Positions 11,302 to 60,916 of a stretch of DNA of 64,000 bases are shown in pieces. Numbering within the stretch: the first letter of the stretch is position 1; every line of letters starts with the position of its first letter. Location: positions 1 to 64,000 of IMG/VR virus record IMGVR_UViG_3300043411_000921. One strand, given 5' to 3'. The translations under genes were made by a program, and so were the position numbers. The notes below the pieces were generated by a model that searched no databases, was not told the DNA's origin, and saw only the letters and a program-made list of their open reading frames with translations.

Positions 11302-11493
11302 CTAGGTGCTTGTATCAATCAATTCAAGCTCGTCATCATGAAACCAATAACAATCGACTTCATGCTCGATGGAACCGTTAGCAACCAACACAAGAAATTC
11401 AGTTCCCCAACTATCAATGATCACTCCGAAAAAAGGAAATACGCCATCACGTTTAAATTCACAATCACACCTTACCAAATCACCAACCTTCAT
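11302..11493 (-). CDS. Small beta-barrel array-family protein
   Basis: MKVGDLV; VLVANG; ELELI. Confidence 0.65.
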   Translation of the reverse strand: MKVGDLVRCDCEFKRDGVFPFFGVIIDSWGTEFLVLVANGSIEHEVDCYWFHDDELELIDTST

Positions 11494-11741
11494 TTGTTTT
11501 TCAATCCATCCCAGGATACAAGCAACTCCTCAACCAAATCACAATAAAACCACCAAATCTCCAACAGTCCATCGGACTCTCTTCCTTTGACGGCAATATT
11601 CATCAACGCATCTCTGGCAACCTGTGGAATATGTTCCGCACTCATTCCAGTTGCTTTTTCGGCATCTTGAACAAATCTTTCCCAATTCGTTTCATAGAAG
11701 CCATCCAGAATTCCAAGCTCAACATCGGAAGGGGTTGTCAT
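11490..11741 (-). CDS. Hypothetical protein
   Basis: AGGAG SD; ATGA coupling. Confidence 0.7.
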   Translation of the reverse strand: MTTPSDVELGILDGFYETNWERFVQDAEKATGMSAEHIPQVARDALMNIAVKGRESDGLLEIWWFYCDLVEELLVSWDGLKNK

Positions 11742-11780
11742 GTTTATCTCCTATCTTTGTCTCACAGTAAAGAAGGATTG

Positions 11781-12611
11781 TCAAGTCATTCCTCTGAGGG
11801 ACTTGTAGAGATTTGAATACATCATTTCTGGATCATTCTCAGACAACCCAGCACGCTGACCATCCGAAATCTCAATCACAATCCAGTTTCCATCTTCCTT
11901 TTGAGCAACATCCAAAGTGAAGAAAGGAATGTTGGGAGACACTCTCTCAGCAGCTTCGCTAAGGATGCTGGGAGGAATAATAGAGGCGTCTGGTGGTGAG
12001 GATAACCCTGCGTCATCTACCGGCCAATAGAAGCCACTAGAAAGCATCCTCGAACCATAGAAGAACAGTCTAAATTCCATCGACACAGGACAAGACTTCC
12101 CATCCCAGCAACCAAGTCTTTTCAATGGAACATATTCCCGAGCAACGATTTGTTGACCATCAAATCTTGGGTTGTTGTTCATTTCGACGAGAAGGTTGAT
12201 GGCTTGCTGTTTGTCAGCCGCAAACATCTTGTTCCAGCGAGACTTATCCGCTTTCGCTCCCTTCACAATAAAACCTTTGTGTTCGGGGAAGGTTGGAAGG
12301 GTTGAAAAGTCTGTGTAAGTTTTTGGTGTGAGTTCATCCAGGTCATAAGACCAACTGGACGGATCATCCGCATAGACATACGCTCGACGATCATTCAACA
12401 GCGTACCGCCCAGCCTTTTGACTTGGGTTTCAACTCTACGAGGCCAAGGCCACATCGTATGCCTTGCAATCACCAAATCCCCAGGCTGAACATCCAAAAC
12501 ACAATCAGAAATCACGAAGTCTGTGTGATTCCTTACTGCATCTAGTTCTCCTGGATCAATAACAGATGCTTCAAACAGCCAAAGGATTCTGCCAAGATGA
12601 GGAGTATTCAT
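11781..12611 (-). CDS. ATP-grasp domain protein (R2K-clade-like)
   Basis: EFRLFF; FFTLDVAQKEDGNWIVIEISDGQRAGL. Confidence 0.8.
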   Translation of the reverse strand: MNTPHLGRILWLFEASVIDPGELDAVRNHTDFVISDCVLDVQPGDLVIARHTMWPWPRRVETQVKRLGGTLLNDRRAYVYADDPSSWSYDLDELTPKTYTDFSTLPTFPEHKGFIVKGAKADKSRWNKMFAADKQQAINLLVEMNNNPRFDGQQIVAREYVPLKRLGCWDGKSCPVSMEFRLFFYGSRMLSSGFYWPVDDAGLSSPPDASIIPPSILSEAAERVSPNIPFFTLDVAQKEDGNWIVIEISDGQRAGLSENDPEMMYSNLYKSLRGMT

Positions 12612-13240
12612 TTGTTGGTGTTCGGAATCGGAGTTCTTGTTGAAAGATCGAACAAAGCAAGGGAAAGACGACGACAAGCTTCGTGCCAAGCTGTTCGAAC
12701 TTCTGGGTTTTCAGACTCAGCAAACCTCTTGGAATTCTTGTCGTAATATTGAAGGTTAGAACAGGCGTCTTGTGCTTTGCCGAGAATTTTTGCGCTAAAA
12801 ACCTGTGCAGGAGTAAGTTTTTTGGATTCTCTGTTTCCATAGCCAAAACCATAGGTGGAGCCAACCCCTTCTTCGTGTGGACCACAAACTCTGACATCTT
12901 CACCAATCCCACAAAGAGCACTGAGAGCAAATCCGGGACAGCCATCGGAATGCCAGTTTTGGTTCAATTCTTCAAGCTGATGCCAATGAGCTTCTCCGCA
13001 AAAAACGCACGCAACCGTTTGATCACATGCCTCATACATCCAAGGCATCACTTCAACCAACTCTGTCAAAACCTCTTCGTAATTCCCAAGCACTCGCTCC
13101 AGCAACTTCCTCATCTCTTCTGGAGAAAGAGAGTCAAGACCACTGGTTCTGAGTGTTTTGGTCTGCTCAAGAGTGAGACAGTGTTTCAGTTTGTGTGTGA
13201 GGTTTGGATCAACCTCGTTTTCATTCGGTGGCATCGTCAT
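12608..13240 (-). CDS. Hypothetical protein with CxxC...HxxxC motif
   Basis: CVFCG...HSDGCP; GAGG SD. Confidence 0.65.
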   Translation of the reverse strand: MTMPPNENEVDPNLTHKLKHCLTLEQTKTLRTSGLDSLSPEEMRKLLERVLGNYEEVLTELVEVMPWMYEACDQTVACVFCGEAHWHQLEELNQNWHSDGCPGFALSALCGIGEDVRVCGPHEEGVGSTYGFGYGNRESKKLTPAQVFSAKILGKAQDACSNLQYYDKNSKRFAESENPEVRTAWHEACRRLSLALFDLSTRTPIPNTNK

Positions 13241-13397
13241 AGACCTCGCAGTAACACTTTCCGTTTTTCAGATCATCCCCCGAAGTGTGGGAATGACACG
13301 GAAAATTGTTGTAAAAATCGGTTTCGAAGATTTTCCTCAGAAAATCCTCACCACTAACGGGAATGAGTTTATTCGGGTGCTTTGCATGATACCAACG

Positions 13398-13697
13398 TTA
13401 CCAAACCCGAACCGTGTCCCGATAGTGTGGGTCTGGATAGTTGATAAACACCCTGGTTGGACAAGTGGGAACTTGCTTCCAGGTGAGGTTGTTGTATCCG
13501 AACTCTTTTGCCGGAGCCCATCGGCCACCACACGCCCTGCGATAACTCTTGAACCCACTCTTGAAAGGAACCAAAAGGAAAAGGAGCCGCACCAGGAAAG
13601 AAACCAAAGACTTGGGCTTGGGCTTGGGAGGAACCATAAGATCCTTTGCAGAAACTCGGTAGTGCTGCATGAAAGAAGTGTTGTTGGGCGTGTTCAT
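13398..13697 (-). CDS. Hypothetical protein
   Basis: TAATG coupling to upstream gene. Confidence 0.6.
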   Translation of the reverse strand: MNTPNNTSFMQHYRVSAKDLMVPPKPKPKSLVSFLVRLLFLLVPFKSGFKSYRRACGGRWAPAKEFGYNNLTWKQVPTCPTRVFINYPDPHYRDTVRVW

Positions 13698-14029
13698 TAT
13701 CCGGCGTAGCTCCAGAGAATCCAGCAGGGCTGGGTGTTTGGCGTTGATGGTCTGAGTGTATCAGGAACCTTGTTCAAGCGCAAGAGAAAATCGTCCGTGG
13801 CTGGAAGATCGCTGGGGATGCAGATGGCTCCGTTGTCAATCTCATATCCATAACGATCCGTTGCTACTGAAATGGCAGAACCTCTTGCATAAACCACGGC
13901 GAAGTCTCCTCCACCCATCGGTTCAACCAACTCAACGGCATAATCACTGGACTCATCAAAGAAATCGTAATCAGGTGGTGCTGGAATCTTCCAGCCAAAA
14001 ACCAAATAAACTGACAGTGAGGTTGACAT
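13697..14029 (-). CDS. Hypothetical protein
   Basis: ORF in operon. Confidence 0.65.
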   Translation of the reverse strand: MSTSLSVYLVFGWKIPAPPDYDFFDESSDYAVELVEPMGGGDFAVVYARGSAISVATDRYGYEIDNGAICIPSDLPATDDFLLRLNKVPDTLRPSTPNTQPCWILWSYAG

Positions 14030-14038: not shown

Positions 14039-14236
14039 TTATTCTTCTTCTTGGGATTGGTGAGGAGTTGGGTCAAGGTAGCCAAAAACATTTGGAATCC
14101 AGACAAGTTTTCCTTCCGGGGAAAGGAGGCGAATAAACTCCTGATCCTGTTCGGTGGTTTTGAAACCAACGATCAAGTAGGTGATGGTGCTTGGGGAGAA
14201 CAAATCACCAATGCGGATTGAAATGTTTCGGCTCAT
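14039..14236 (-). CDS. Array-family protein
   Basis: IRIGDLF; LLSPEGKLVW. Confidence 0.65.
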   Translation of the reverse strand: MSRNISIRIGDLFSPSTITYLIVGFKTTEQDQEFIRLLSPEGKLVWIPNVFGYLDPTPHQSQEEE

Positions 14237-14541
14237 AGATTGCTTTCTGTTTTGCTTGCGATGATGTCAAATCGAACAAAATCCTCGTCCAAGATTTTCA
14301 TAGTTTTCAGAGTCTTAGGATCGAGAAAAACGGTACAAGTTTTGCCGGAACTCAATTCGCTGCTGGCTGAGACAGAAAAAGCAATGACCAGAAGAACACT
14401 GCCCTCGTCAACGACGAAAGGTGTGCGAGGGGGCTGTGTTTCCCAACGCTCGGCATTTCCTAGACGGGTTACAAAAAGCCCATATTCCCACGTTCTTAGC
14501 CGAACCAAATTGTCAATTTCAAGCTTTTGTGTCGTTGACAT
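14233..14541 (-). CDS. Array-family protein
   Basis: LEIDNLV; EGSVLLVI; FLDPKT. Confidence 0.6.
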   Translation of the reverse strand: MSTTQKLEIDNLVRLRTWEYGLFVTRLGNAERWETQPPRTPFVVDEGSVLLVIAFSVSASSELSSGKTCTVFLDPKTLKTMKILDEDFVRFDIIASKTESNL

Positions 14542-14542
14542 T

Positions 14543-14917
14543 TTAAGAAGTGTCGGTGATTTTCTGAAAGAAACATTCACCGATGTCACAAGCGAGAACC
14601 TTCCCGGTTGTTGGGTGAAGGAAACAAAGAAGATCATCCCAGCCCGCTCCGAGAAGTGTGAGAGCTTTTCCCGGTAAGATAGATCGTTGTCCAAGAAAGA
14701 CAAGGTTGTCACCAGGATAAACGTATTCACAATCATAGTCCTGGTTGTCAGCCTTCATGACGACTTCACAAAAGGAACTAAATGGTGGCATCAAAACTCC
14801 CACGAAACCGTAATAGACCGTTTCTCCATCTCTTTGTGCTGATAAACAATTGACATATTGATACAACGTGCCAACTTCCAATCGCTTCCAAACTCGGATT
14901 CCTTTATTCTTGCTCAT
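14543..14917 (-). CDS. Array-family protein
   Basis: LEVGTLY; PGDNLVFLG; FLHPTTGK. Confidence 0.65.
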   Translation of the reverse strand: MSKNKGIRVWKRLEVGTLYQYVNCLSAQRDGETVYYGFVGVLMPPFSSFCEVVMKADNQDYDCEYVYPGDNLVFLGQRSILPGKALTLLGAGWDDLLCFLHPTTGKVLACDIGECFFQKITDTS

Positions 14918-14983
14918 TTACACCAGCGACTTTATGAAAGAGGCATTCCCCGACACAACAGCGTTCCTGGTTTACACTTACCG

Positions 14984-15289
14984 TTACAAATCATTGTCAT
15001 CAACCACCACTTCCTCAAAACATGGCAACGAAATATGCACTAGGCGGCAGGAGTCCCAAGGCTCTGCAATCCTTCCGTTCACAATCATTCCTGTTTTGCA
15101 GTGAAGAATCAAAGCACATGAATTCATTTTTGGTGTTTGTAAAGCAATGCCAAAGTCTCCTGGAAGGATTTGAACGCCTCGATCATGGATTTTGCAGTTA
15201 ACAACCCCGTTGTTCTCGAAGGAATAGACAAGGATAGCTTTTATTCCATCTCGGGCTTTTAGGAGTGCTCCGACTTTTGCTGTTGTCAC
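14984..15289 (-). CDS. Array-family protein
   Basis: KVGALL; PGDFGIAL; ILHCKTG. Confidence 0.6.
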   Translation of the reverse strand: MTTAKVGALLKARDGIKAILVYSFENNGVVNCKIHDRGVQILPGDFGIALQTPKMNSCALILHCKTGMIVNGRIAEPWDSCRLVHISLPCFEEVVVDDNDL

Positions 15290-15441
15290 TCTCTGTGAAT
15301 CCTTCCACAGTTTTCACAACGCCAAACCTTTCCACCAACAGGCTGCCCAGAAGATTGAATCAGAACCCAGGAGTGATTGCAAGGTGCAGGCTTCATCCCA
15401 AAACACCATTCATGAAGTTTTCCTGGAAAAGATGGGTTCAT
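15286..15441 (-). CDS. Small Zn-binding protein (CxH...CxxC)
   Basis: ATGA coupling; CNHSW...CENCG. Confidence 0.5.
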   Translation of the reverse strand: MNPSFPGKLHEWCFGMKPAPCNHSWVLIQSSGQPVGGKVWRCENCGRIHRE

Positions 15442-16214
15442 TGGGAATGTGTCTCCCCACGAGGAAAATAAACCTTGTTTGCTTGCACTTGAACAATATC
15501 CCAATCCCCAGGCTTGTCATCAGTTGTCACCAAGGCGGTCAAACGACCACCAAAGCAACAACCAGTGTCAATTGCATAACACCGAGCGCCAAACTCATTC
15601 TCCCAGACAATCACTTCCTCCAAACTCAAAACCTGATGTCCGAAAATGATGTCATGGTTGCCTTGGTACTTCTCAGCCCAAAACACAGAGCCTTCCGGCT
15701 GAATGAATCCAGGCATCTTCATTGCCATCATCTTGTTTGTCTTTTCACAAACATATCGGCACATGGTCAGAGCCTCGGGAGTCTGCCTGTCCATCGGGAT
15801 GCCAGGAACAACCCCGGCGTGGACCACAAAGGCATTATGCGTGGCAAGCTCGATGTAAAACGGGCAGGAGTCCATCCAGGAAATCTCGGCCCCGGATAAT
15901 GCCTTTACGGTCGATTCCTGGTCGGGGGAATATTTCATCGGGTTCCGATAACCAGGACGAGTTGCAACACGGTGCATGTGGTCAGCACGACGCAACAGCT
16001 TCGTGTCGTGATTTCCCTTCACAAACTCAATGTTGTTTTCCCGCATGAAACGAACAACGCCGGGAGAATCAGGTCCACGATCCACGGCATCTCCAGCAAC
16101 AATTGCCCGATCCACTCCCTTGTCAAAACCAACCTTGTCCAGGAGCATCTTGAGTTCATCAAGGCATCCGTGGACATCGCCAATCACAATCGTCTTCTTC
16201 TGCTTCGAGTTCAT
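15438..16214 (-). CDS. Calcineurin-like metallophosphoesterase (ApaH/PrpE/Ser-Thr phosphatase-like)
   Basis: GDVHG, GDAVDRG, GNHD, VHAG, FGH, IDTGC. Confidence 0.9.
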   Translation of the reverse strand: MNSKQKKTIVIGDVHGCLDELKMLLDKVGFDKGVDRAIVAGDAVDRGPDSPGVVRFMRENNIEFVKGNHDTKLLRRADHMHRVATRPGYRNPMKYSPDQESTVKALSGAEISWMDSCPFYIELATHNAFVVHAGVVPGIPMDRQTPEALTMCRYVCEKTNKMMAMKMPGFIQPEGSVFWAEKYQGNHDIIFGHQVLSLEEVIVWENEFGARCYAIDTGCCFGGRLTALVTTDDKPGDWDIVQVQANKVYFPRGETHSQ

Positions 16215-16221
16215 GGTGAGC

Positions 16222-16251
16222 AGTCTAACACATCCTCCAGCCCAAGGTCAA
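16222..16251 (-). promoter_or_regulatory. sigma70 promoter, leaderless (TTGACC-18-TAGACT-7-ATG)
   Basis: Read directly. Confidence 0.65.
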
Positions 16252-16333
16252 GAAGATTTTTTCCGTGGATGATCCCTTTGGTCTGGGTGCTGGGGCTAAA
16301 AGCCTTGGATTTAAGGAGGTTGGGTTGCAGGTT

Positions 16334-16404
16334 GTGGAGGATAACCAGAAGAGGGATCCAAGAAGGGAACTCTAAGAAAGAAGGGGGTTCATCCGGGGAG
16401 AAGG
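16334..16404. repeat. Purine-rich ~70-bp intergenic repeat, copy 1
   Basis: GTGGAxGATAACCAGAAGAGGGAT..AAGAAGG shared with 37844-37915. Confidence 0.7.
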
Positions 16405-16546
16405 AGTGTGTTGAAAGGATTTTTGAGTATTGGTAAAGAGGGTAAGTAATCTACCAGCTACGGTCTTGAGCAAGAACAATTGGGGTTGTTTCCTCTGCCA
16501 TCACCAATGCAGTCATCCCTTAAAGAACCAAGTCCCCCCAACCTTT

Positions 16547-16816
16547 TTATGCAACATATTCCCAGTAGAACAGGCTCAAGTCATGTTCAATTCCTTCGGG
16601 TGAGTAAACCCGCATGTGTTTTCCGTATTGCTGAAACCAATCAAATGTGATTCGATAATCAGCTCTTATGATTTTGCCATCACTTCTCAAAAGAACGAGT
16701 AGGTTGTTAACGGAATTGCTGCTAACGATCAAAAAGGATCCGGTTATTTGACCCTGAGCGTCTACAATCAAGGTTCCAGGCACGAAAAAACGAATGAAAG
16801 AATCAAGTTTTGTCAT
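16547..16816 (-). CDS. Array-family protein
   Basis: FVPGTLI; FLIV; LRSDGK. Confidence 0.7.
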   Translation of the reverse strand: MTKLDSFIRFFVPGTLIVDAQGQITGSFLIVSSNSVNNLLVLLRSDGKIIRADYRITFDWFQQYGKHMRVYSPEGIEHDLSLFYWEYVA

Positions 16817-17052
16817 TGCTCTTCCTTTTCTGGGTAAACGATTTCAACACTGGGCCAGTTTTCTCTCAGCCAACCTTCAATCGTGGAAGCTCTAACCAAG
16901 TGAGTTTCTCCAGATAGCCACAGCGTCTTGGCGATGTAAGGTTCGTTAGGATTGTCAGCCTTGTTCCAACACAAAATCACAAAAGAGAACTTTCCGTCTT
17001 TGTGATGAAACAGTGTTCCGGCTGGGAATTTGTCTTTTGTGGTTTGGTTCAT
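16813..17052 (-). CDS. Array-family protein
   Basis: FPAGTLF; FVILCW. Confidence 0.7.
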   Translation of the reverse strand: MNQTTKDKFPAGTLFHHKDGKFSFVILCWNKADNPNEPYIAKTLWLSGETHLVRASTIEGWLRENWPSVEIVYPEKEEQ

Positions 17053-17264
17053 TGTTGAGAAGGTTTAGGTGGGAGTAGGACCAAAGTGTTGTCTTGTAAC
17101 GAACAATGATGAATGGTTGTGTAGTGATGACTCGTAACGAATCCATCGGCATTCATGATTTCTACTTCAGGGAATTGTGTCCAAGAAAGGATTAGAAAAG
17201 AAGCCATTGAACGCACAAACAATGTCCCTGGAGGAAATTGTTCTTGAATGGTCTGGGGATTCAT
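17049..17264 (-). CDS. Array-family protein
   Basis: FPPGTLF; FLILSW; MNADG. Confidence 0.7.
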   Translation of the reverse strand: MNPQTIQEQFPPGTLFVRSMASFLILSWTQFPEVEIMNADGFVTSHHYTTIHHCSLQDNTLVLLPPKPSQQ

Positions 17265-17497
17265 GTTGTGGTTGTTTGTTGGTGAGACGAAAAGATTTCA
17301 AATTGAATTGGAAACCCGCCACGGATGTCTGAATTGGGGCAAAGCGATTTTAAGGACATGCTAGATCTTTTGAATTCGATTTCACCATCCTCGAACAACA
17401 CGGTTGCCCGCTTCCCATCGCTCCTCCAGGCAAGAATCAAAACTGACCAGCAATCAGAAGACAACAATGTCCCAACAGGAAACTGATCCTTTGTCAT
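17261..17497 (-). CDS. Array-family protein
   Basis: FPVGTLL; VLILAW; LFEDG. Confidence 0.7.
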   Translation of the reverse strand: MTKDQFPVGTLLSSDCWSVLILAWRSDGKRATVLFEDGEIEFKRSSMSLKSLCPNSDIRGGFPIQFEIFSSHQQTTTT

Positions 17498-17499
17498 AA

Positions 17500-17739
17500 T
17501 CACTCCTCTGAGGTTGATGGCGGAAGAACAATTTGAGTGTTTGGCCACAAAGAGCCTTTGTGGATTATCTCGAAACTAAAAGTCATAATTCGACCACGAC
17601 CTTCCAACACCTCAGCCTGTTCCGTCTCATCGCACCAAGAAACAATCAATTCCACTGCATAGAACTTGTTCTTATTCGTGGAGTGATACAAGATCATGGT
17701 TCCAATTGGGAACCGAGCTTTCACGTCTTGAAAATTCAT
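17500..17739 (-). CDS. Array-family protein
   Basis: FPIGTMI; LIVSW. Confidence 0.7.
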   Translation of the reverse strand: MNFQDVKARFPIGTMILYHSTNKNKFYAVELIVSWCDETEQAEVLEGRGRIMTFSFEIIHKGSLWPNTQIVLPPSTSEE

Positions 17740-17748
17740 TTGGTGCTT

Positions 17749-17976
17749 CTAGTCTTCTGTGTCGGGGTTGGGTGGGATGATAGTAACATACTTGCATTCT
17801 GCTGGCCAGAAGAAAATACTCTGAACCACGCCACTCGGCCAAAGAACATCATAAGCCGAAGCAGGAGGATACTGACATGATTTTTGTTTGAGCACGACGG
17901 CAACGTATTCCCCCATGTATCCAAAAAACACGAGAGACCCAGGTGCAATGTTTTTGAGATCTTCTGGTGTTGTCAC
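17749..17976 (-). CDS. Array-family protein
   Basis: IAPGSLV; VLWPSG. Confidence 0.65.
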   Translation of the reverse strand: MTTPEDLKNIAPGSLVFFGYMGEYVAVVLKQKSCQYPPASAYDVLWPSGVVQSIFFWPAECKYVTIIPPNPDTED

Positions 17977-18233
17977 TTTGAGTTTTCCTCATCATGATCT
18001 GGGGAATAGATTAAAAAGTCGTAAACCCTGCCCTTGAAACTTTGCAAAAAATACTTGGCCTTTATCCCAGACTTTCCACTTAAGCCAATGAAGCTAGTTG
18101 TGCCATCACAATACGTCATATCCCTCTGTTCGGTTTTTACGTTATCCAGAACAAGACAGATGATTTCCTTTGTGGTTGATAGAACAATCAACGCTCCAGG
18201 AACGATATCTTTGGGGTTCTGGGAGATGGTCAT
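17973..18233 (-). CDS. Array-family protein
   Basis: IVPGALI; CLVL. Confidence 0.7.
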   Translation of the reverse strand: MTISQNPKDIVPGALIVLSTTKEIICLVLDNVKTEQRDMTYCDGTTSFIGLSGKSGIKAKYFLQSFKGRVYDFLIYSPDHDEENSK

Positions 18234-18547
18234 GGCTCGTTTCCAGTTGGAAGTAGAATGTAATAGTTGTCCCAAACAATCTCATCGTAGTATCTGTTCT
18301 GGACTCCTTCGACACAAAACTTGTGTTTTTCTCCCGTTACACCGTGTAACCCTGTGAAATACACACTCCAACGAATCTCGTCGCTCAAAAAAGCCCAATC
18401 CCGGCGAGATTCGTTGGAACAATGCACATCCCCCAAAACCAAAAGGTTCACATAAGTTGATGGATCACGACTGACAAAAAGTGTTCCTGGAACAATCTGC
18501 CTCGGGTGAATACCATAGAAAGAATTCTCATACTCCGCATCTGTCAC
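18230..18547 (-). CDS. Array-family protein
   Basis: IVPGTLF; LLVL. Confidence 0.7.
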   Translation of the reverse strand: MTDAEYENSFYGIHPRQIVPGTLFVSRDPSTYVNLLVLGDVHCSNESRRDWAFLSDEIRWSVYFTGLHGVTGEKHKFCVEGVQNRYYDEIVWDNYYILLPTGNEP

Positions 18548-19090: not shown

Positions 19091-19093
19091 AGA

Positions 19094-19911: not shown

Positions 19912-19925
19912 GAACTTTCGAGTGG

Positions 19926-53454: not shown

Positions 53455-53492
53455 GACCTGGAGAGTACCAACAAGACCTGTCCATGTCAACC

Positions 53493-54970: not shown

Positions 54971-55297
54971 TTACTGCTCGGCAAAAGACAAATCAACCTC
55001 CTCTAACCAACACGATCTTAACGAAGAAATGAACTGGTTTTCCATCCCAACCCTCAACAAATTCTTTTCATCTGCCATGAAACACCAACGAAAAATTTCA
55101 CCCGATCCCGAAATCAAAAACGACTGCAATGGACCAGTGTGATCCATCACTGTGGGCGGAATGCAAACCAAGAGATTCCTTTCCAAATCAAGCTCAAAGG
55201 CTTGGAAGAACCTTTTTCCTTTTATTTCAACACAGAGGCGATAAAGCTTTCCAACTTCGGGAAGATTGTGTGGTATTTCTTTTTCATTCAACATCAC
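54971..55297 (-). CDS. Array-family protein (recent duplicate of 55284..55604)
   Basis: HNLPEVGKLYRLCV; LDLERNLLV. Confidence 0.75.
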   Translation of the reverse strand: MMLNEKEIPHNLPEVGKLYRLCVEIKGKRFFQAFELDLERNLLVCIPPTVMDHTGPLQSFLISGSGEIFRWCFMADEKNLLRVGMENQFISSLRSCWLEEVDLSFAEQ

Positions 55298-55604
55298 AAA
55301 TCACCTCTTCCAACCAAGCGAGAAAATTCGACGAGTATAGCTGTGCTTTTACCGCCACCCTCAACAACATATCTTTATTTGACAAGTGGCACCAACGAAA
55401 AACCTCACCCGTACCCGAAACCAAAAACGACTGCACTGGTCCCATACCATCTCTTATTGTTGGTGGAATACCAACCAAGAGATTCCTTTCTAAATCAAGC
55501 CCATAGGCGCTGAAGGGCCTTTTTCCTCCTCTTTTAACACAGAGTCGATAAAGCTTTCCAACTTCGGGAAGATTGTGCAGTTGTTCATTGTCACTCAACA
55601 TCAC
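55284..55604 (-). CDS. Array-family protein
   Basis: HNLPEVGKLYRLCV; WLEEV. Confidence 0.75.
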   Translation of the reverse strand: MMLSDNEQLHNLPEVGKLYRLCVKRGGKRPFSAYGLDLERNLLVGIPPTIRDGMGPVQSFLVSGTGEVFRWCHLSNKDMLLRVAVKAQLYSSNFLAWLEEVICDVE

Positions 55605-55896
55605 AAACCACCTCCTCTAACCACATCAAATTATATTCTTTCGGACGCAAACCTAAACCAAACAAAACAACTGAATGGTGAGTACCACTCACTAGAAAAA
55701 AATCGTAGGGCTGGCGAATATGCTCTCTTTTTAGCTTTGGCAAGCAAAGTAAGAATGCTCCCTCGGGACAGAACTTAAACTCGCCTCCTCCATAAAGACT
55801 ATTTTGGCTTTTGAAAGCATTGAGCGTCAAGTGCTTAAGAGGAGAACCCATAAGACGATACAATTTTCCAGGGATTGGTCTGTGGCTCTCGTTCAC
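55591..55896 (-). CDS. Array-family protein
   Basis: PIPGKLYRL; FLLC; WLEEVVCDVE. Confidence 0.7.
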   Translation of the reverse strand: MNESHRPIPGKLYRLMGSPLKHLTLNAFKSQNSLYGGGEFKFCPEGAFLLCLPKLKREHIRQPYDFFLVSGTHHSVVLFGLGLRPKEYNLMWLEEVVCDVE

Positions 55897-56177
55897 TATT
55901 CTTCCTCCTCTTCCACTTTTTCAAGCCAAACAGTCAAGTCGGGGTTGTAAAGATGGTACCGCCCGACAACCCCAGGCTCAAAAGCAACAAGATTGGGGCA
56001 ACTCACTTGTTCACCACTCCCAGCAATCAAATACTCGCTGTTTCCAAGATAACAAACGGTTTTTCCATTCGCCATTTTCATTATAGTTGCGCGGGTGAAG
56101 CGATGGCTGGGCAGGCTGCGCACATGATAGAGATAGCCAATGACTGGGTTGCTTGCAAAAACTTCAGGTTGATTCAT
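55896..56177 (-). CDS. Array-family protein
   Basis: PVIGYLY; WLEKV. Confidence 0.7.
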   Translation of the reverse strand: MNQPEVFASNPVIGYLYHVRSLPSHRFTRATIMKMANGKTVCYLGNSEYLIAGSGEQVSCPNLVAFEPGVVGRYHLYNPDLTVWLEKVEEEEE

Positions 56178-56520
56178 AATCCACTTCCACTTCAACCAAC
56201 CAAACCCGTGCGCCTTCAGCATCTTCGTAAGTCTTGGGTTGATAACCTGCTGGAAGTACCTTCAAACGCCAAGTGAAGATTTCGCCCGAATCCGAACAAA
56301 CAAAGGTTGGCATAAGCCAATTTTCCTCCTCTGTTTTTCTCGGCTCAGTGCAAAGAAGAAAGGCTTTTTGATCATCAAAGATGAAATAATGCCCGAATCG
56401 TCGCGCTTTTGGGTGATAGGATTTGATTCGCTTGTCAATGTGTCTGTTGGCAAGACGATACAACTTTCCAGGAATAGGATCGGTTGCAACAACCTTGTTT
56501 TTCTCCTTATTCATCGTCAT
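56164..56520 (-). CDS. Array-family protein
   Basis: PIPGKLYRL; FLLC; SGEIFTW. Confidence 0.7.
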   Translation of the reverse strand: MTMNKEKNKVVATDPIPGKLYRLANRHIDKRIKSYHPKARRFGHYFIFDDQKAFLLCTEPRKTEEENWLMPTFVCSDSGEIFTWRLKVLPAGYQPKTYEDAEGARVWLVEVEVDYEST

Positions 56521-56803
56521 TCTCCACTTCTTCGAGGTAATCCACATAATTTTTTCTGGGCATTGCAACGGTGACACCACCCCAGTCAAACTTGTTACCG
56601 TAAGGGGTTATGAAAACAGGAATGAGATACCCACCATCATCTCTGATTTCACAACAAAGAATTGGGGTTGTTTTCCTGTCCAATGAAAAGGAATTGGTGT
56701 TGACATCAACCAGTGTCAAAACTGGTTGACTGTAAGGGTGTTTGATCTCCCGGAGCCAATACAGTTTTCCCGCTTCGGGATCTTTGTAGAGTGGTGTTGT
56801 CAT
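56507..56803 (-). CDS. Array-family protein
   Basis: PEAGKLY; FITPYG. Confidence 0.7.
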   Translation of the reverse strand: MTTPLYKDPEAGKLYWLREIKHPYSQPVLTLVDVNTNSFSLDRKTTPILCCEIRDDGGYLIPVFITPYGNKFDWGGVTVAMPRKNYVDYLEEVENDDE

Positions 56804-56820
56804 GTTGGGTGTTCCCGTTC

Positions 56821-57135
56821 CTACTCTGCTGTGAGAATGGGAGTGCTGTCAACCACAGAAGAATAAACCAGAATCTTTTTGCCTTCTGGTGTCAAGAGCA
56901 ACACCATTTTCTTGCCCCATAATTCGGGATGGTCAAGAACAACAAACAAGTCCGTTCTGTTAAAGAAAAATTGACTGGCTGAAAGATAGTCAATCGTAGA
57001 CATCTTTGGGTTGTCGGGATCAAAGGGCCGCCCACTCGCTCTTGCCCAAAACTCATCATCCAATTCTCCCACCAGCCGAACAAGCTGTCCGATCTCAGCC
57101 GGTTTCCTGTACGAGTTCTTTCTGAGAATTTGCAT
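56821..57135 (-). CDS. Array-family protein
   Basis: EIGQLV; LFVVL; LLTPEGK. Confidence 0.7.
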   Translation of the reverse strand: MQILRKNSYRKPAEIGQLVRLVGELDDEFWARASGRPFDPDNPKMSTIDYLSASQFFFNRTDLFVVLDHPELWGKKMVLLLTPEGKKILVYSSVVDSTPILTAE

Positions 57136-57460
57136 GGATCGTCCTTTCTTCATCAAGATCATCCGCGTTTACTAAAATCACACTTCCATCTGGAAAAAGC
57201 AAGGAAATGAAGTTGGTTCGGAATTTTTTTTTTGTTGGGTGGGTTTGAATGACAAGGAAGTAATCAAATGTGTGGCGCCCAACAACGGGGTCAATTCCTT
57301 CCCTGCTCGGCACTACGATCCACTTGTCGTTAACGTAATTGTAGATGCGGTAGTGACCCTTGTCACGATCTGAAAGTGTTGGAAGAATGCGGACTTCTCG
57401 TTCGTTGTGATTGCCCCATTCATCCTTGAAACAAACCAAGTCACCAACACGAATATTCAT
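57095..57460 (-). CDS. Array-family protein
   Basis: IRVGDLV; YFLVI; LLFPDG. Confidence 0.7.
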   Translation of the reverse strand: MNIRVGDLVCFKDEWGNHNEREVRILPTLSDRDKGHYRIYNYVNDKWIVVPSREGIDPVVGRHTFDYFLVIQTHPTKKKFRTNFISLLFPDGSVILVNADDLDEERTIHANSQKELVQETG

Positions 57461-57690
57461 AATATCGGATTCCTTTCTGCCAGAACGATCAAATCAGAAA
57501 AAACTGGAATTATCAATCCGTTTGGGGTTAGGAGATAAACCCGATGTGGGGGGGCGGTAGCAAGAACCAAAAACAAAGCACCCTTTGCGGAATAAGCCCA
57601 GTCATGTTTGACGTGACTCCAGAGTGCTATCTCAGGCTTTAACTTCACCAAATCACTGGGCTCAAACTCCATTTTCATCTTTTCTTTCAT
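57457..57690 (-). CDS. Array-family protein
   Basis: FEPSDLV; LFLVL; LLTPNG. Confidence 0.7.
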   Translation of the reverse strand: MKEKMKMEFEPSDLVKLKPEIALWSHVKHDWAYSAKGALFLVLATAPPHRVYLLTPNGLIIPVFSDLIVLAERNPIL

Positions 57691-57967
57691 TCATGGTGAT
57701 AGCGGTTTGCCAATCAAAGAGCGATGCTCTACATGAAACTTTGATTCCATCTGGTGATAGGAGCAAGACAAAACCAAACTCCTCATACTTCAACACAAGG
57801 AACCAAGAAACATATTTGGCTTTGAAAAAGCACAACCTTCGAGGCGCGTCAACTTCGTAAAGATGATTCCTCATTTCGCAATGAGTTGTTGGGGTGCTGT
57901 TAGAAATTCGATCTGGTCGCACCAGTGTTCCCGGTTTTACCTTTCCACCAAAGAAATCATCAGTCAT
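57662..57967 (-). CDS. Array-family protein
   Basis: VKPGTLV; WFLVL; LLSPDG. Confidence 0.7.
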   Translation of the reverse strand: MTDDFFGGKVKPGTLVRPDRISNSTPTTHCEMRNHLYEVDAPRRLCFFKAKYVSWFLVLKYEEFGFVLLLSPDGIKVSCRASLFDWQTAITMNERKDENGV

Positions 57968-58200
57968 GGTAATGGAGCTTTCTTAAAGTCTTCGCGGATT
58001 GATTTGACTATTCGACCATCAGGGCAAACCAAGATTACTCCTGGGAATGAGCGGCTGCCGCAAACGATTGTAACGAATTCGGCAACGAGAAACATTGAGT
58101 CTTCTGGATAAGAGCAGCCCTCGGTGTTGGGACGTTGATAGTCTATCAACAACGCAAGCTGAGGGTCCAGAATCGCCAAATCTCCCACTTTCAAGGTCAT
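57964..58200 (-). CDS. Array-family protein
   Basis: LKVGDLA; MFLV; LVCPDG. Confidence 0.7.
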   Translation of the reverse strand: MTLKVGDLAILDPQLALLIDYQRPNTEGCSYPEDSMFLVAEFVTIVCGSRSFPGVILVCPDGRIVKSIREDFKKAPLP

Positions 58201-58472
58201 TCAACAACCTTTGCTTTCCTGAACTTGTCAGTACGAACATGAATGACTTTACCCATTGGATCTACCAGTTCCAAATAACTCACATCTTGTTGCAAAATAT
58301 TGCACCAGCGATAAAAACACCTGCAAATGAGAAATTTTGAATCGTGACGATACACGCCGATTGGTTTTTCCATGTTGTAGATCGCGGTGATAAAAAACCT
58401 GCCCGGCCCAATATTTCGCGCTGCTTCAACCAAGTCCCCTGGATTGAGGATCGACGAATCCAAATTTCTCAT
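58197..58472 (-). CDS. Array-family protein
   Basis: LNPGDLV; KFLI; LVDPMGK. Confidence 0.7.
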   Translation of the reverse strand: MRNLDSSILNPGDLVEAARNIGPGRFFITAIYNMEKPIGVYRHDSKFLICRCFYRWCNILQQDVSYLELVDPMGKVIHVRTDKFRKAKVVE

Positions 58473-58750
58473 GTTGCAACCTTCCTGAAGAGGTGGGGCA
58501 AAGCCATTGAAGCTTTTCCGTCAGGACAAAGGATCTTGACAACCAACAAATCCTTAGTGGAAAAATCAGGATTTGAGACGAAAAAACAATCCAGGACAAG
58601 AAACAGGGAATTCATTGGATACGTTCGAGCGACATAATCAACAACCCTTCCTCCAGCACAATTCAGGTCGAGAAAGTAGAAGGATTTTTCACTTGGATTA
58701 AAGGTAATGGGCTCTAGCAAATCTTCAGGAAAAAATGGGATGGATGTCAT
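58469..58750 (-). CDS. Array-family protein
   Basis: FPEDLL; LFLVL; ILCPDGK. Confidence 0.7.
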   Translation of the reverse strand: MTSIPFFPEDLLEPITFNPSEKSFYFLDLNCAGGRVVDYVARTYPMNSLFLVLDCFFVSNPDFSTKDLLVVKILCPDGKASMALPHLFRKVAT

Positions 58751-59082
58751 GGTTCTTCTGAATCCTCGGGGGTCAATTTTACCGGAACTAGAAACTCTTG
58801 TTCTTCAACGGTGTATCTGTCAAGGATGCGGATTTTGCCTTCCGGGTCAACAACCTTCAACACTTCAACCGAACGAGCCCACAGAGCAGGTCTAACATCC
58901 ATAACCGACAAAACCAAGAACATGGAATCCTTTCGAGCAGTATAGAGCTTGTCCTCCTTCCAACAAAAGAAACTCATAAATCCAGAGTCAATTCCATTGT
59001 TTCGTGCATTCTCGGGGACTTGAGCCAAGTAGGGTTTGTCCAAAACCGTTTCTCTTATGATTTCTGCAAACTCATATTTCAT
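58747..59082 (-). CDS. Array-family protein
   Basis: MFLVL; VVDPEGK. Confidence 0.65.
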   Translation of the reverse strand: MKYEFAEIIRETVLDKPYLAQVPENARNNGIDSGFMSFFCWKEDKLYTARKDSMFLVLSVMDVRPALWARSVEVLKVVDPEGKIRILDRYTVEEQEFLVPVKLTPEDSEEP

Positions 59083-59726
59083 GGGATCACCACGATTTGA
59101 GGAACGCAAGCAGAATTGTAGAACTTCGTTCCAAACGCTTCTGCTGTCTCGCCACCGGAAGAATGAACATGACCAAACATGTGAACTTTGATGCTCGCAG
59201 CATTCGGATGGTAAGCGTAACATTGCCCGATGGTTGAGCAGCCCCATTCGCTTGCCAAAATTCCTTTTGGTGGAACATGGGTCACAAGCACATCGACATT
59301 TTCATGTTGAAACAGCTTCCTTGAAGCAACAGCAAGGTCATGTGGCTGCAACTCACCATTCCAATCTCCATAGATGTAAGGAATGAAGCTATGCCCAGTC
59401 CACCGCTTCCCACCAAACTCAGTTATTTTGTCCGGTGTTAGCAAATGAACTTCCCCAGCATATCCACACTCAGTCAGCATCTCAGCCAAACAAATGAAAT
59501 CGTGGTTGCCATTGACGACAATGACGGGACGACCAGCTAGATAACGACAGATGTTTTGCGAGTGCTTTGCAAACCAATCCCTTTGGAATTTTGGTTCAAT
59601 ATTCCAATTTCCTCTGATAAGGTTTGGGAAAAAATCACCTGACGACACCACAACGTCCACATCTTTGTCGATGAGGGCTAACGGGTGCAAATCAGCGTGA
59701 AGGTCAGATGCGTGGAAAATCTTCAT
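59079..59726 (-). CDS. Metallophosphoesterase (Icc/MPPED-like)
   Basis: SDLH, SGD, GNHD, THVPP, GHVH; promoter TTGACC-17-TAAGTT at 59743-59771. Confidence 0.88.
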   Translation of the reverse strand: MKIFHASDLHADLHPLALIDKDVDVVVSSGDFFPNLIRGNWNIEPKFQRDWFAKHSQNICRYLAGRPVIVVNGNHDFICLAEMLTECGYAGEVHLLTPDKITEFGGKRWTGHSFIPYIYGDWNGELQPHDLAVASRKLFQHENVDVLVTHVPPKGILASEWGCSTIGQCYAYHPNAASIKVHMFGHVHSSGGETAEAFGTKFYNSACVPQIVVIP

Positions 59727-59782
59727 GGTGTTACTATCCGGGAACTTACCACGTCCGCATCGCAAGGTCAAGAAAATTCTCA

Positions 59783-59880
59783 GACGGGCTCAGGATGCTT
59801 TATAGAGCCCGCAAATAATTTGATGGGTCGGAGGTCGTCCAAACAATTCAGACGCCTGGATGACCCCTTCTCGTGTCAAG
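59783..59880. repeat. Dispersed ~110-bp element, copy F
   Basis: CAGGATGCTTT ... CCTTCTCGTGTCA at +74, as in copy A. Confidence 0.65.
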
Positions 59881-59895
59881 AAAGAATAACAACAG

Positions 59896-60168
59896 GTGAA
59901 AAAGAACATGGTTAAACAACAATATGGCAGACAACAGCAACAGCAGTCCCGGAATGGTGTGATGGAGTGCCGGGATGTGTTTGTGGTTTTGGAAGGATCG
60001 AAGGTTGGAGGGATTTATCGGTATCGAGATGATGCCGATGCACACGCCGAAGTCGTTGGAGGAAAAGTCATCCTTCAACAAATCAAAGAGGAAACGCCCG
60101 GTTGGGTGTCAACAATGCTTGAGGCTGGAAGGGAGAAGGCTAGGATGCAGTCAGGAGGAGGAAGATAG
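59896..60168 (+). CDS. Hypothetical protein
   Basis: Plus-strand ORF filling the gap; start may be the internal ATG. Confidence 0.55.
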   Translation: MKKNMVKQQYGRQQQQQSRNGVMECRDVFVVLEGSKVGGIYRYRDDADAHAEVVGGKVILQQIKEETPGWVSTMLEAGREKARMQSGGGR

Positions 60169-60174
60169 TAGGGA

Positions 60175-60591
60175 TCAACCAACACCATCATAAACGATGA
60201 CGTTGGAATAGGCATTGCTTCCAGTAAAGTAAGGATCTGAGCTGCTGTAAGCAAAAGAGCTTGTAAGATTTGGAATGCTGGCTGTTGGAATGCCTGTGAG
60301 CCCAGCGGCAACAGAGAATGTGGAACCAGTAACCCACATCTTTTTCACACGAACTTCAAGTGTCAACGTCTGACCAGAAGGAACTGTGAACTTATTGTTT
60401 CCCAGAAGTCCATTGCTTGTGAAAGCGATTGTGGTCGCTCCTCCGGTTGCAGCAACAGTCACAAACTTGGTGACATAAGGGAAATTCAACTGAATTGGTT
60501 GTCCTGCTGCGGCTGTCGAAGAAGTGACGTATGGAATGCCTGAGATTTGATAGGCAGGCGTGTGATTGTATCCAGGGTCAGGATATTGCAT
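60175..60591 (-). CDS. Putative virion structural protein (beta-rich)
   Basis: AYQISGIPYVTSS, FPYVTKFVTV; TAGTTA upstream; Ser/Thr/Gly-rich. Confidence 0.65.
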   Translation of the reverse strand: MQYPDPGYNHTPAYQISGIPYVTSSTAAAGQPIQLNFPYVTKFVTVAATGGATTIAFTSNGLLGNNKFTVPSGQTLTLEVRVKKMWVTGSTFSVAAGLTGIPTASIPNLTSSFAYSSSDPYFTGSNAYSNVIVYDGVG

Positions 60592-60916
60592 TTTCGTTGT
60601 CTGTAACTACCTCAAACATCTCAGAAATGTTATCATTGGCCGACAACAAACCAATCTCTCCGCCAGGAAGAAGAAAACAAAAACTGCTATAATCTCTCCC
60701 CTTGAATTCCCCAAGGAAAACAACTGGCTGGCTGAATTTCAACGCTTTGGAACCAGTGATTTTAACCGGCTCCAGGCTTTGTGAGGTAATCCAAACGTGT
60801 GCAGTTTGTTGCACAGAAGTTGGGACACCTTTCTTTCTTCTGGATAGGATGGGATTTGTTTTCCATCTAACGAGAGATCCTAGTGGGAATGGAAGTCCTT
60901 GGTTGTCATTCATCAT
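60578..60916 (-). CDS. Array-family protein
   Basis: FPLGSLV; PVVFLG; LLPGGEIG. Confidence 0.7.
   Translation of the reverse strand: MMNDNQGLPFPLGSLVRWKTNPILSRRKKGVPTSVQQTAHVWITSQSLEPVKITGSKALKFSQPVVFLGEFKGRDYSSFCFLLPGGEIGLLSANDNISEMFEVVTDNENAIS

Follow-up and report, generated by a model that had tools for sequence, protein, structure and literature searches.

A large array of small paralogous genes with a predicted SH3-like fold in an uncultured phage

Why would a phage carry many tens of small, similarly sized genes packed head-to-tail on one strand, and are these genes in fact related? The question was raised by a 64,000-nt stretch (positions 1 to 64,000; hereafter the window) of IMG/VR record IMGVR_UViG_3300043411_000921, a 241-kb uncultured phage. 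Between window positions 11302 and 60916, the original prediction described 85–90 small SH3/KOW-like paralogues. A tiling of minus-strand ORFs across this interval gave 132 co-directional, mostly overlapping genes; of the junctions, 72 overlap, and 39 overlap by exactly 4 nt (30 ATGA and 9 GTGA). The family described below occupies about 40–50% of this 50-kb stretch.

To test whether the shared skeleton exceeds chance, sequence comparisons of increasing sensitivity were used. BLASTP alone links only a 9-member group, a 4-member group, and a few pairs, leaving 127 singletons, and most copies share only about 20% identity. An iterated HMM seeded on the group at 43.4–45.7 kb converged on 67 real proteins and none of 324 reversed or shuffled decoys, and 65 small proteins are supported by the profile. 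For cross-validation, a model built only from the members at 11–36 kb found 20 of 26 members at 42–61 kb above every decoy, and the reverse test found 26 of 39. Leave-one-out hhalign, with BLAST-near paralogues removed, placed 53 of the 65 above all 132 decoys; the other 12 failed this test. Among all 559 ORFs of 45 aa or more in the window, the HMM hit 70 on the minus strand and none of 267 on the plus strand. In loci around MnmA, hits fall only on the coding strand, and loci from unrelated large phages gave 0–1 hits each.

We therefore count 53 members as robust and 65 as supported by the profile; a further 17 candidates, which rest on weak scores, bring the total to 82, and the true number is at least 53 and probably about 80. 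Beyond these there are 2 re-called ORFs, 3 decayed copies, and 1 fused domain, making the predicted 85–90 an upper bound rather than the demonstrated number. With that qualification the observation itself is confirmed, and the predicted block limits match those of the members recovered: 11302–11493, 14039–15289, 16547–33359, 34549–35551, 42358–45745, 48095–49157, 54971–59082, and 60578–60916. The parts of the array are as follows.

10394–11260, minus strand: pentapeptide-repeat protein (288 aa) belonging to a BLASTP family of pentapeptide paralogues, with a C-terminal stretch (residues 200–261) matched by the family HMM as one domain (i-E 0.007); a possible fusion of the two expanded families.
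11302–11493, minus strand: outlying member (63 aa) in the iterated HMM set, supported by the profile only, with a leave-one-out hhalign score of 16.5, just at the decoy maximum.
14039–15289, minus strand: block of 4 small genes, comprising 2 robust members (14039–14236 and 14543–14917) and 2 candidates.
16547–33359, minus strand: main array of 54 small genes, comprising 27 robust members, 6 supported by the profile only, 10 candidates, and 11 unassigned; the predicted FPxGTL, SP.HG, DPW/HP..G, and ..G..GW sub-blocks are visible in the translations.
16813–18547, minus strand: FPxGTL sub-block of 7 genes, 2 in the profile set and 5 candidates; the block profile scores 19.3 against the family profile by hhalign, compared with 8.1 for the reversed control and 6–8 for real negative groups.
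22599–22846, minus strand: decayed copy, frameshifted in the window.
26365–26742, minus strand: member with a 7-Cys cluster inserted in the RT loop, inferred to be a metal-binding insert; all 7 Cys are conserved in a 77%-identical orthologue in the relative R2.
26735–27018, minus strand: decayed copy, split over two frames.
34549–35551, minus strand: three members between the RNA ligase and the amidoligase.
42358–45745, minus strand: block of 13 genes that includes the 9-copy KDG.RGF subfamily at 43376–45745, the only large group detected by BLASTP.
44985–45228, minus strand: truncated copy, a 52-aa ORF followed by an out-of-frame remnant of the KDGQRGF strand, encoded in the gap 44985–45069.
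45485–45745, minus strand: representative member (86 aa) used for structure prediction.
48095–49157, minus strand: block of 4 members.
54971–59082, minus strand: block of 14 genes, comprising 8 robust members, 2 supported by the profile only, and 4 candidates, with the P..GKLY and LL.PDG sub-blocks and the most recent duplicate pair.
60578–60916, minus strand: last member of the array (112 aa), found by the 11–36 kb half-model with E 1.3e-7; beyond it the genes change strand, and only one weak hit follows.

For prediction of the fold, AlphaFold2 models were built for two of the roughly 80 proteins. Both models are SH3-like beta-barrels. The model of 45485–45745, from an MSA made only of the paralogues, has pLDDT 92.4 and pTM 0.81, with top Foldseek hits to the SH3b domains of 2hbw and 2evr (TM 0.66), followed by the Lyn, Fyn, and Src SH3 domains. 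The model of 17500–17739, within the FPxGTL sub-block, has pLDDT 87.7 and pTM 0.72 and is an SH3/Tudor-like barrel, although the MSA used for it included the family; its best matches include Tudor, ribosomal L2/KOW, Spt5 KOW, and integrase C-terminal domains. Foldseek E-values are modest (about 1e-2), as is usual for about 60 aligned residues. The family consensus, vG.LyR ... W ... Gd.FVvLg ... Llp..Gk.gw ... leeV, carries the three predicted anchors, which in the 86-aa model correspond to βa (G.LY), βb (GD.FVVL), and βc, distal hairpin, and βd (LL.P.GK.GW), followed by βe (.EEV). Conserved residues are core and turn positions, whereas variation in length and sequence sits in the RT loop, which is the predicted variable segment (inserts up to 35 aa), the n-Src loop, and the segment before βe.

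Despite this fold, no Pfam, PHROG, or isolated-phage relative reached significance: no member reached any Pfam SH3 threshold, Pfam KOW and Tudor models gave no hit, and tblastn returned no hit in 50,697 phage records. Among 1.84 billion sequences, the family profile reached two multi-SH3_3 proteins, aligned on the W.kV..pnGk.GW strand pair, but an ad hoc SH3_3 profile–profile comparison was weak (probability 4%). The proteins are 52–131 aa long, and 64 of the 65 members have no long hydrophobic stretch, so they are probably cytoplasmic. The family is on the whole acidic (median pI 5.9, median net charge −2), and 40% of members have a tail charge of −3 or lower, against 14% of other small proteins (p = 1.6e-5).

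We next examined how the array evolves. As predicted, neighbouring copies are more alike than distant ones: for 32% of members the closest paralogue lies within 1.5 kb, against 7.8% expected and a maximum of 21.5% in 1000 permutations, and the Mantel test gave p = 0.004. Most copies nevertheless share no DNA similarity, and just one adjacent pair, the repeat 55050–55316/55357–55623, is 80% identical at the DNA level. The predicted term "gene accordion" therefore fits only partly; this is long-term birth-and-death evolution rather than a recent amplification.

Comparison with a strain about 97–99% identical elsewhere showed family genes to be gained, lost, frameshifted, or replaced, with 10 of 49 family orthologues falling below 85% identity against 0 of 45 other genes (Fisher p = 0.0013). 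Seven intact family genes are found only in the window and at least 6 only in the relative R1, in addition to the 3 decayed copies in the window. R1 carries 4 extra family genes inserted between the orthologues of 14984–15289 and 14543–14917, and the R1 orthologue of 48894–49157 is only 43% identical, whereas its neighbours are 89–100% identical. The intact 92-aa family gene R1_33925_34203 (HMM E 7e-5) matches the decayed copy at 22599–22846 in two different frames, residues 1–15 and residues 22–92, the latter at 93% identity. Likewise, R1_30000_30296 (98 aa) matches 26735–27018 in two frames, of which the C-terminal frame still matches the HMM with E 0.035; the truncated copy at 44985–45228 has no orthologue in R1. 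Copy number after the deaminase gene also differs between strains, with 9 in the window, 6 in those designated L007 and L001, and 4 in L008, and gene content in the 54971–59082 block differs among L105, L106, and L107. Against R2, the family median identity is 50%, compared with 82% for large genes.

Pooled dN/dS is 0.45 against R1 and 0.30 against R2, indicating purifying selection. Core strands give 0.34, the RT loop 0.53, and the n-Src loop 0.49, so that loops evolve about 1.5 times faster than strands. No dN/dS above 1 was found, and neither diversifying selection nor an arms race is demonstrated; other small genes of the same region outside the family also have raised dN/dS (0.33), and part of the signal may be generic to small phage genes.

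Taken together, the original interpretation is partly supported. What the analysis shows is a lineage-specific expansion of one family of stand-alone proteins, lying in long co-directional, overlapping gene runs in an arm of a phage that carries auxiliary enzyme genes, and evolving by tandem duplication, deep divergence, loss, frameshift decay, and allele replacement while individual copies remain under purifying selection; our confidence in this structural and evolutionary part is high, with the fold resting on the two predicted models. Expression, binding of host proteins, anti-defence, and host takeover, by contrast, are all inference. In SH3 domains the RT and n-Src loops flank the ligand surface, and we think it most likely that each paralogue binds a different macromolecular target, a host protein or a protein of a competing element, through its loop-defined face. 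This functional part is plausible but tentative; the two parts blended merit moderate confidence. The genomic context includes an RNA ligase, a PNK-like ATPase, phosphoesterases, an MnmA-like enzyme, an amidoligase, an R2K ATP-grasp enzyme, GGACT, and the pentapeptide-repeat paralogues. Iyer et al. (2021) discuss phage RNA ligases as repair of RNA cleaved by RNase effectors (PMC7824862). The other enzymes are of types known from such conflict systems.

Of the alternatives, two remain possible but unlikely, to an equal degree. The paralogues could be nucleic-acid binders of the Tudor, KOW, Sm, or integrase-C-terminal type of small barrel that tune phage or host RNA or DNA transactions, in keeping with the matches of the second model, with the neighbouring RNA ligase, PNK-like ATPase, MnmA-like enzyme, and exonuclease, and with small SH3-fold proteins noted next to jumbo-phage DNA polymerases (PMC7824862). 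The acidic character of the family and its acidic C-tails, the absence of a conserved basic patch from the consensus, and the lack of Pfam KOW or Tudor hits speak against this. Alternatively, the family could be a largely dispensable set of duplicates with little specific function, persisting by near-neutral birth and death through high duplication rates in a large genome with slack packaging limits. Frequent loss and frameshift decay between close strains, a dN/dS higher than that of enzymes, and the absence of a conserved surface motif beyond the scaffold residues would fit; however, dN/dS stays well below 1 in both strain comparisons and is lowest in the core strands, members persist in relatives whose MnmA is only 55–60% identical, and tight overlapping operon packing is maintained.

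Less likely still, the barrels could be readers, carriers, or substrates of peptide tags made and removed by the phage's own amidoligase, R2K ATP-grasp enzyme, and gamma-glutamyl cyclotransferase, which lie inside or beside the arrays. The best structural matches, 2hbw and 2evr, are SH3b domains of gamma-D-glutamyl-L-diamino-acid endopeptidases, and those domains help bind gamma-glutamyl peptides. The argument is purely associative, the enzymes are single-copy while the barrels number 53–80, and no conserved ligand-binding residues are seen. A role as cell-wall-binding SH3b modules in lysis or adsorption, suggested by similarity to the SH3b domains of endolysins and NlpC/P60 enzymes, is very unlikely, because the proteins have no signal peptide, membrane segment, or attached catalytic domain, no Pfam SH3_3 hit reaches threshold, and the genes lie among DNA/RNA-metabolism and auxiliary enzyme genes, not next to any lysis or structural gene found in the window. 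That the skeleton is a chance or compositional pattern, or that the ORFs are not genes, as the BLASTP singletons and low identity might suggest, is contradicted by all decoy, opposite-strand, cross-validation, and leave-one-out controls, by dN/dS below 1, and by the confident common fold predicted from the paralogues alone.

Among characterized proteins, bacterial SH3b domains (Pfam SH3_3/SH3_4), such as the N-terminal SH3b of the cyanobacterial NlpC/P60 endopeptidases 2hbw and 2evr and those of LytB and phage endolysins, share the five-strand barrel and give the best Foldseek matches (TM 0.62–0.66), and the βc–distal–βd motif resembles W.kV...G..GW. The array proteins differ in being stand-alone, without a secretion signal or attached hydrolase, and no SH3b family is known to be present in dozens of copies in one genome. 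Single stand-alone SH3-like phage proteins (BFVD entries named "SH3 domain protein" and DUF1653-like proteins) are similar in size and predicted fold (TM 0.5–0.63) but show no detectable sequence relation and, as far as is known, occur as isolated genes rather than as arrays. Eukaryotic SH3 and Tudor domains share the fold, with the RT and n-Src loops as variable elements next to the binding face, but give no significant sequence match, and neither canonical proline-peptide-binding residues nor an aromatic cage were established. Multigene families and gene accordions at the genome arms of large eukaryotic DNA viruses likewise form tandem paralogue arrays whose copy number differs between strains, but here the virus is bacterial and the copies are anciently diverged rather than recently amplified.

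In agreement with the original prediction, no described phage expansion of this size was found. A review of 224 jumbo phages calls a ~35-copy Zn-ribbon expansion in Bacillus phage G "unprecedented" (PMC7824862); there too one small domain with a proposed binding or regulatory role is multiplied within a single large phage genome, but the fold is different, and the present family is larger, is arranged as long tandem overlapping arrays, and has documented strain-level turnover. This makes it one of the largest single-domain gene expansions seen in a phage. On the binder reading, which remains inference, the set would act as a repertoire of inhibitors or adaptors for host takeover or counter-defence, and its strain-level turnover would follow variation in the hosts.

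The array lies in an arm of the 241,399-bp uncultured viral contig IMGVR_UViG_3300043411_000921. The window is positions 1-64000 of this contig, and the coordinates of the RNA-ligase and MnmA matches coincide with those of the window. Megablast found no close relative of the sequence among 50,697 isolated phage records, and the RNA ligase is at most 33% identical to any of them. G+C content is about 45% throughout, and nearly all genes run on the minus strand. ORF tiling gave 132 genes between 11302 and 60916. Of the junctions, 72 overlap, 39 of them by 4 nt (30 ATGA, 9 GTGA). This tiling mis-called at least two genes (43111-43392 and 26169-26498 are the conserved frames) and created a few spurious short ORFs. 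The larger genes interspersed among the small ones are as follows.
33346-34482, an Rnl1-type RNA ligase
35733-37196, an amidoligase (Amidoligase_2)
37232-37768, a PNK-like AAA_33 ATPase
39937-40545, a DEDDh exonuclease
45756-46223, a dCMP-deaminase-like gene
46561-47616, an MnmA-like tRNA thiolase (tRNA 2-thiouridylase)
52606-53490, a gamma-glutamyl cyclotransferase (GGACT)
53493-54944 (minus strand), a pentapeptide-repeat protein
15438-16214 and 59079-59771, two metallophosphoesterases
11781-12611, an R2K-clade ATP-grasp enzyme

The RNA ligase, the PNK-like ATPase, the two metallophosphoesterases, the MnmA-like gene and the deaminase-like gene form an RNA-repair and nucleotide set interleaved with the arrays, whereas the amidoligase, the ATP-grasp enzyme and GGACT, which lie in the same arm, are a combination that suggests peptide ligation or tagging chemistry. 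A second paralogue family (1531-11260 and 53493-54944, minus strand) consists of ten proteins linked by BLASTP. Its 483-aa member matches the Pfam pentapeptide-repeat models, a related 110-aa pentapeptide gene lies beyond the window in strain contigs, and one member (10394-11260) ends in a stretch that matches the SH3-like family profile. A 98-aa hydrophobic, probably membrane, protein that does not belong to the family sits inside the main array (21081-21377, minus strand), and several other unassigned small genes (27327-28638) have no Pfam match either. A single tRNA-like gene (943-1017, minus strand) scores 43 bits with Rfam, but ARAGORN could not assign an anticodon ('tRNA-???'). A 58-nt direct repeat of 78% identity (16334-16391 and 37844-37901) lies in two of the longest intergenic gaps (16215-16546 and 37769-37943); it matches no Rfam family and may be a regulatory element or a small RNA. 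A scan of 14-34 kb for sigma-70 promoters and terminators showed no enrichment (22 sites against 23.4 expected, and 17 against 23.3). The product of 63218-63979 was not on record, probably because the start codon is called differently.

To establish whether the small genes form one family, BLASTP all-against-all was used first, but it proved too insensitive, finding one 9-member group (43376-45745), one 4-member group (54971-56520), a few pairs and 127 singletons. Profile methods gave a different picture. An HMM seeded on the 9-member group was iterated against the 162 window proteins plus 324 reversed or shuffled decoys, and converged on 31 proteins at E 0.01 and on 67 at E 0.05, with no decoy at any step. 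Because iteration can drift, the model was cross-validated: a model built only from the 39 members at 11-36 kb detected 20 of the 26 members at 42-61 kb above the best of 324 decoys, 10 of them at E < 1e-3, and the reverse model detected 26 of 39. In a leave-one-out hhalign test, in which the BLAST-near paralogues of each query were removed from the template, 53 of 65 small members exceeded all 132 reversed-alignment decoys.

Two further controls used real sequence. Among all 559 ORFs of 45 aa or more in the window, the model hit 70 on the minus strand and none of the 267 on the plus strand, and in 21-kb loci of related and unrelated large phages it hit only coding-strand ORFs, with 0-1 hits per locus in the unrelated ones. 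Seventeen further small proteins, including the FPxGTL block and the groups at 14.2-15.3, 32.6-33.0 and 57.9-58.8 kb, among others, scored weakly but above both reversed and real-protein controls, and in the correct register. Because probabilities in the group-wise hhalign comparison stayed below 15%, these remain candidates only. The defensible count is therefore 53 robust members and 65 with profile support, reaching 82 with the candidates, beyond which there are two re-called ORFs, three decayed copies and one fused domain. The original prediction of a large array of small paralogous genes was thus borne out, although its figure of 85-90 genes is the ceiling. The 65 members encode 19.1 kb, or 39% of the 49.6-kb span, and the 82 encode 23.7 kb.

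The family consensus is vG.LyR ... W ... Gd.FVvLg ... Llp..Gk.gw ... leeV. For structure prediction, an AlphaFold2 model of 45485-45745 was built using only the 65 paralogues as its alignment, giving a mean pLDDT of 92.4 and pTM of 0.81. The predicted fold is a five-stranded SH3-like barrel, with βa at residues 7-10, an RT-type hairpin at 15-32, βb at 37-40, a loop (n-Src) at 41-51, βc at 52-57, a tight turn (the distal hairpin), βd at 62-67, a short helix at 69-74 and βe at 78-80. Foldseek against the PDB returned, in order, the SH3b domains of the cyanobacterial NlpC/P60 endopeptidases 2hbw and 2evr (TM 0.66, rmsd 2.1-3.4 Å), the Lyn, Fyn, Src and Hck SH3 domains, and the SH3b domains of LytB and of a Clostridium phage endolysin, with probabilities of about 1.00 but E-values of only about 1e-2. 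Against predicted viral structures, the top hits were small phage proteins named 'SH3 domain protein', NlpC/P60 proteins and endolysins. A second model, of 17500-17739 from the FPxGTL block, which the HMM had not recruited, reached pLDDT 87.7 and matched SH3-like sub-domains of TraI, a designed SH3 barrel, and Tudor and KOW domains. Its alignment contained the family, making this result supportive rather than independent, and the fold assignment rests on these two members only.

The three sequence anchors of the original prediction thus correspond to βa, βb and the βc-distal-βd hairpin in the model, and the variable segment between the first two is the RT loop. Insert lengths confirm this, with up to 35 residues in the RT region, up to 24 residues before βe and N-terminal extensions of up to 50 residues. 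One RT-loop insert, in 26365-26742, carries seven cysteines, all conserved in a 77%-identical orthologue, from which a metal-binding knuckle is inferred as likely. In 64 of 65 members no hydrophobic N-terminus or membrane stretch was found, and 40% end in a strongly acidic tail, against 14% of the other small proteins (p = 1.6e-5). With regard to the aromatic and proline ligand-binding residues of canonical peptide-binding SH3 domains, the consensus, read from sequence alone without placement of residues on the model surface, keeps an LY in βa and a W in the RT region.

We next compared the family with known ones. None of the 65 members scanned reached a Pfam gathering threshold; the best result was SH3_2 in 4 members, at E of 0.012 or worse and 14.4 bits against a cut-off of 21.8, and LytB_SH3 and SH3_YKFC_2nd each hit one member at E of about 0.07. 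No KOW hit was seen at E up to 0.1 in any of the 65, KOW proteins appearing only as low-ranked fold matches. No PHROG matched, and a PDB sequence-profile search gave nothing significant, with a best hit of E 0.06 to an unrelated transcription factor and the Pex13 SH3 domain at E of about 1. No match was found by tblastn of two members against the 50,697 phage records, and a further search for homologous proteins with the profile returned only the query itself. A profile search of 1.84 billion representative proteins found only 15 hits at E ≤ 1e-3. Of these, 11 are small proteins, nine of which are the window's own or 88-99%-identical strain variants, while the other two (P0005 and P0015) are more distant relatives, about 28% and about 24-52% identical over partial alignments. 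Two are multi-SH3_3 proteins, aligned on the W.kV..pnGk.GW hairpin. The remaining two, which were the top hits, are ankyrin-repeat giants whose score is the sum of 18 weak matches of about 4 bits each (i-E about 0.015 each), and these were rejected as a repeat artefact. An ad hoc SH3_3 repeat profile aligned to the family in the right register but weakly (score 14.3 against 7.2 reversed, probability 4%). The family therefore has the SH3 fold, as predicted, with a hint of kinship to bacterial SH3b, but it is not a member of any curated sequence family.

Paralogues share about 19-27% identity on match columns; those within 1 kb of each other average 27%, against 19-21% beyond 3 kb. For 32% of members the closest paralogue lies within 1.5 kb (7.8% expected; maximum of 21.5% in 1000 permutations), and the Mantel test gave p = 0.004, in agreement with the original prediction that neighbours are more alike than distant copies. 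Only one adjacent pair keeps DNA similarity (80% over 267 nt at 55.05-55.62 kb), although the 43.4-45.7 kb copies share a conserved stretch of 41-76 nt. Most duplications are therefore old. The direct-repeat search found no template/variable-like pair of the kind expected for a diversity-generating retroelement, only repeats between paralogous coding regions, and no reverse transcriptase appeared among the larger genes scanned.

The window was then compared with two partial strain genomes, R1, which joins three overlapping loci of contig 3300013800_000005, and R2, which joins two loci of 3300020576_003018. Against R1, non-family genes are 88-100% identical, and turnover is concentrated in the family. 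Seven intact family genes are present only in the window and at least six only in R1, including a 4-gene block between the orthologues of 14984 and 14543. Three window copies are decayed while R1 keeps an intact gene or has none, 22599-22846 and 26735-27018 being frameshifted and 44985-45228 truncated. Ten of 49 family orthologues are below 85% identity, the lowest at 43%, against 0 of 45 other genes (Fisher p = 0.0013). At 19478-20372, about 590 nt with no convincing ORF but with one terminator-like hairpin at 19829-19844, plus the family gene 20064-20372, are absent from R1, where the flanking orthologues abut directly. Against R2, the family median identity is 50%, compared with 82% for large genes. 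The block after the deaminase gene has 9, 6 or 4 copies in different strains, and the 55-59 kb block also differs among three further contigs.

Pooled dN/dS values by gene class or region, against R1 and against R2.
Family: 0.45 (R1), 0.30 (R2)
Other small genes: 0.33 (R1), 0.23 (R2)
Large genes: 0.17 (R1), 0.13 (R2)
Family, core strands: 0.34 (R1), 0.20 (R2)
Family, RT loop: 0.53 (R1), 0.35 (R2)
Family, n-Src loop: 0.49 (R1), 0.31 (R2)

The genes are thus real and constrained, with the loops relaxed relative to the scaffold; positive selection is not shown at this resolution. Within ±10 kb of MnmA there are 21 hits in the window's contig, 19 and 12 in close strains, 2-6 in relatives at 55-60% MnmA identity and 0-1 in more distant phages, and the relatives at 55-60% carry runs of 2-8 members next to MnmA, whereas more distant large phages carry none. 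The family therefore predates this lineage and has expanded several-fold within it, which, together with the gains, losses and decayed copies, shows a lineage-specific tandem expansion evolving by birth and death. The term 'gene accordion' used in the original prediction fits, in the strict sense, only the copy-number differences, not the deep divergence of the copies. The array stops at 60.9 kb, with only one weak hit in the next 10 kb, and the strand switch at its end is marked by a Dps/ferritin-like DNA-binding protein (60993-61487, plus strand). The exact sequence of this protein occurs in 77 blocks of the public collection, including a contig binned into the NCBI assembly GCA_029980445.1; the phage is therefore widespread, and that assembly might hint at the host. 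The MnmA-like gene was uninformative in this respect, its best bacterial relatives being only 35-40% identical and spread over several phyla. The environment is probably engineered or wastewater systems, because a sister sample (3300013800) is used in a study of phosphorus-removal reactors.

The original interpretation, a library of diversified host-protein binders on a constant scaffold, is supported only in part. What the analysis shows is a stand-alone scaffold, SH3-like in both predicted structures, with no hydrophobic or export-type N-terminus, variable RT and n-Src loops, tandem birth-and-death dynamics with strain-level turnover, and purifying selection on each copy; binding and every other aspect of function are inferred. 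From established SH3 biology, the RT and n-Src loops bound the ligand face, and the most economical reading is a repertoire of binders with different targets, used for host takeover or counter-defence, which fits the neighbourhood of RNA-repair, tRNA-modification, peptide-ligase and pentapeptide-repeat genes. We hold this reading only tentatively. A stronger form is possible but less likely than not: that this lineage has turned a single SH3-like scaffold into a heritable, rapidly reshuffled repertoire of about 80 intracellular binders, each of which would neutralise or redirect a different host or rival-element protein. Such a repertoire would be a viral counterpart of a binder library, with its composition tracking host-strain defence content, and would be the largest single-domain expansion known in a virus of bacteria.

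Among the alternatives, the proteins could be nucleic-acid-binding and Tudor/KOW-like, but their acidic charge argues against this. A near-neutral swarm of duplicates is opposed by dN/dS below 1 and by retention in distant relatives. The case that they are partners of the phage's gamma-glutamyl peptide-ligase set is associative only. Against cell-wall-binding SH3b modules, export-type N-termini were absent in 64 of 65 members and no hydrolase domain was found in the genes scanned with Pfam. Chance resemblance is refuted by the controls.

Single small SH3-like proteins are common in phages, and lineage-specific expansions are known in jumbo phages, where a survey of 224 genomes called a ~35-copy Zn-ribbon family in Bacillus phage G 'unprecedented' (PMC7824862). 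No report of an SH3-like expansion, or of any phage family at this copy number, was found in the open-access text searched, although this absence is not proof. Even without a known function, the locus sets a new upper mark for paralogue expansion in a phage, at 53-80 copies and 19-24 kb of coding sequence, and defines a family absent from Pfam and PHROGs. It also shows that BLAST-level clustering misses such expansions, and the paralogue content of large uncultured phages may therefore be widely underestimated. If the binder-repertoire reading holds, the locus offers dozens of natural, small, soluble SH3-like proteins with different loops, each of which could be a probe or inhibitor of a bacterial process or defence system, and it would give a tractable case for how large phages use gene duplication, rather than horizontal capture, to diversify counter-measures.
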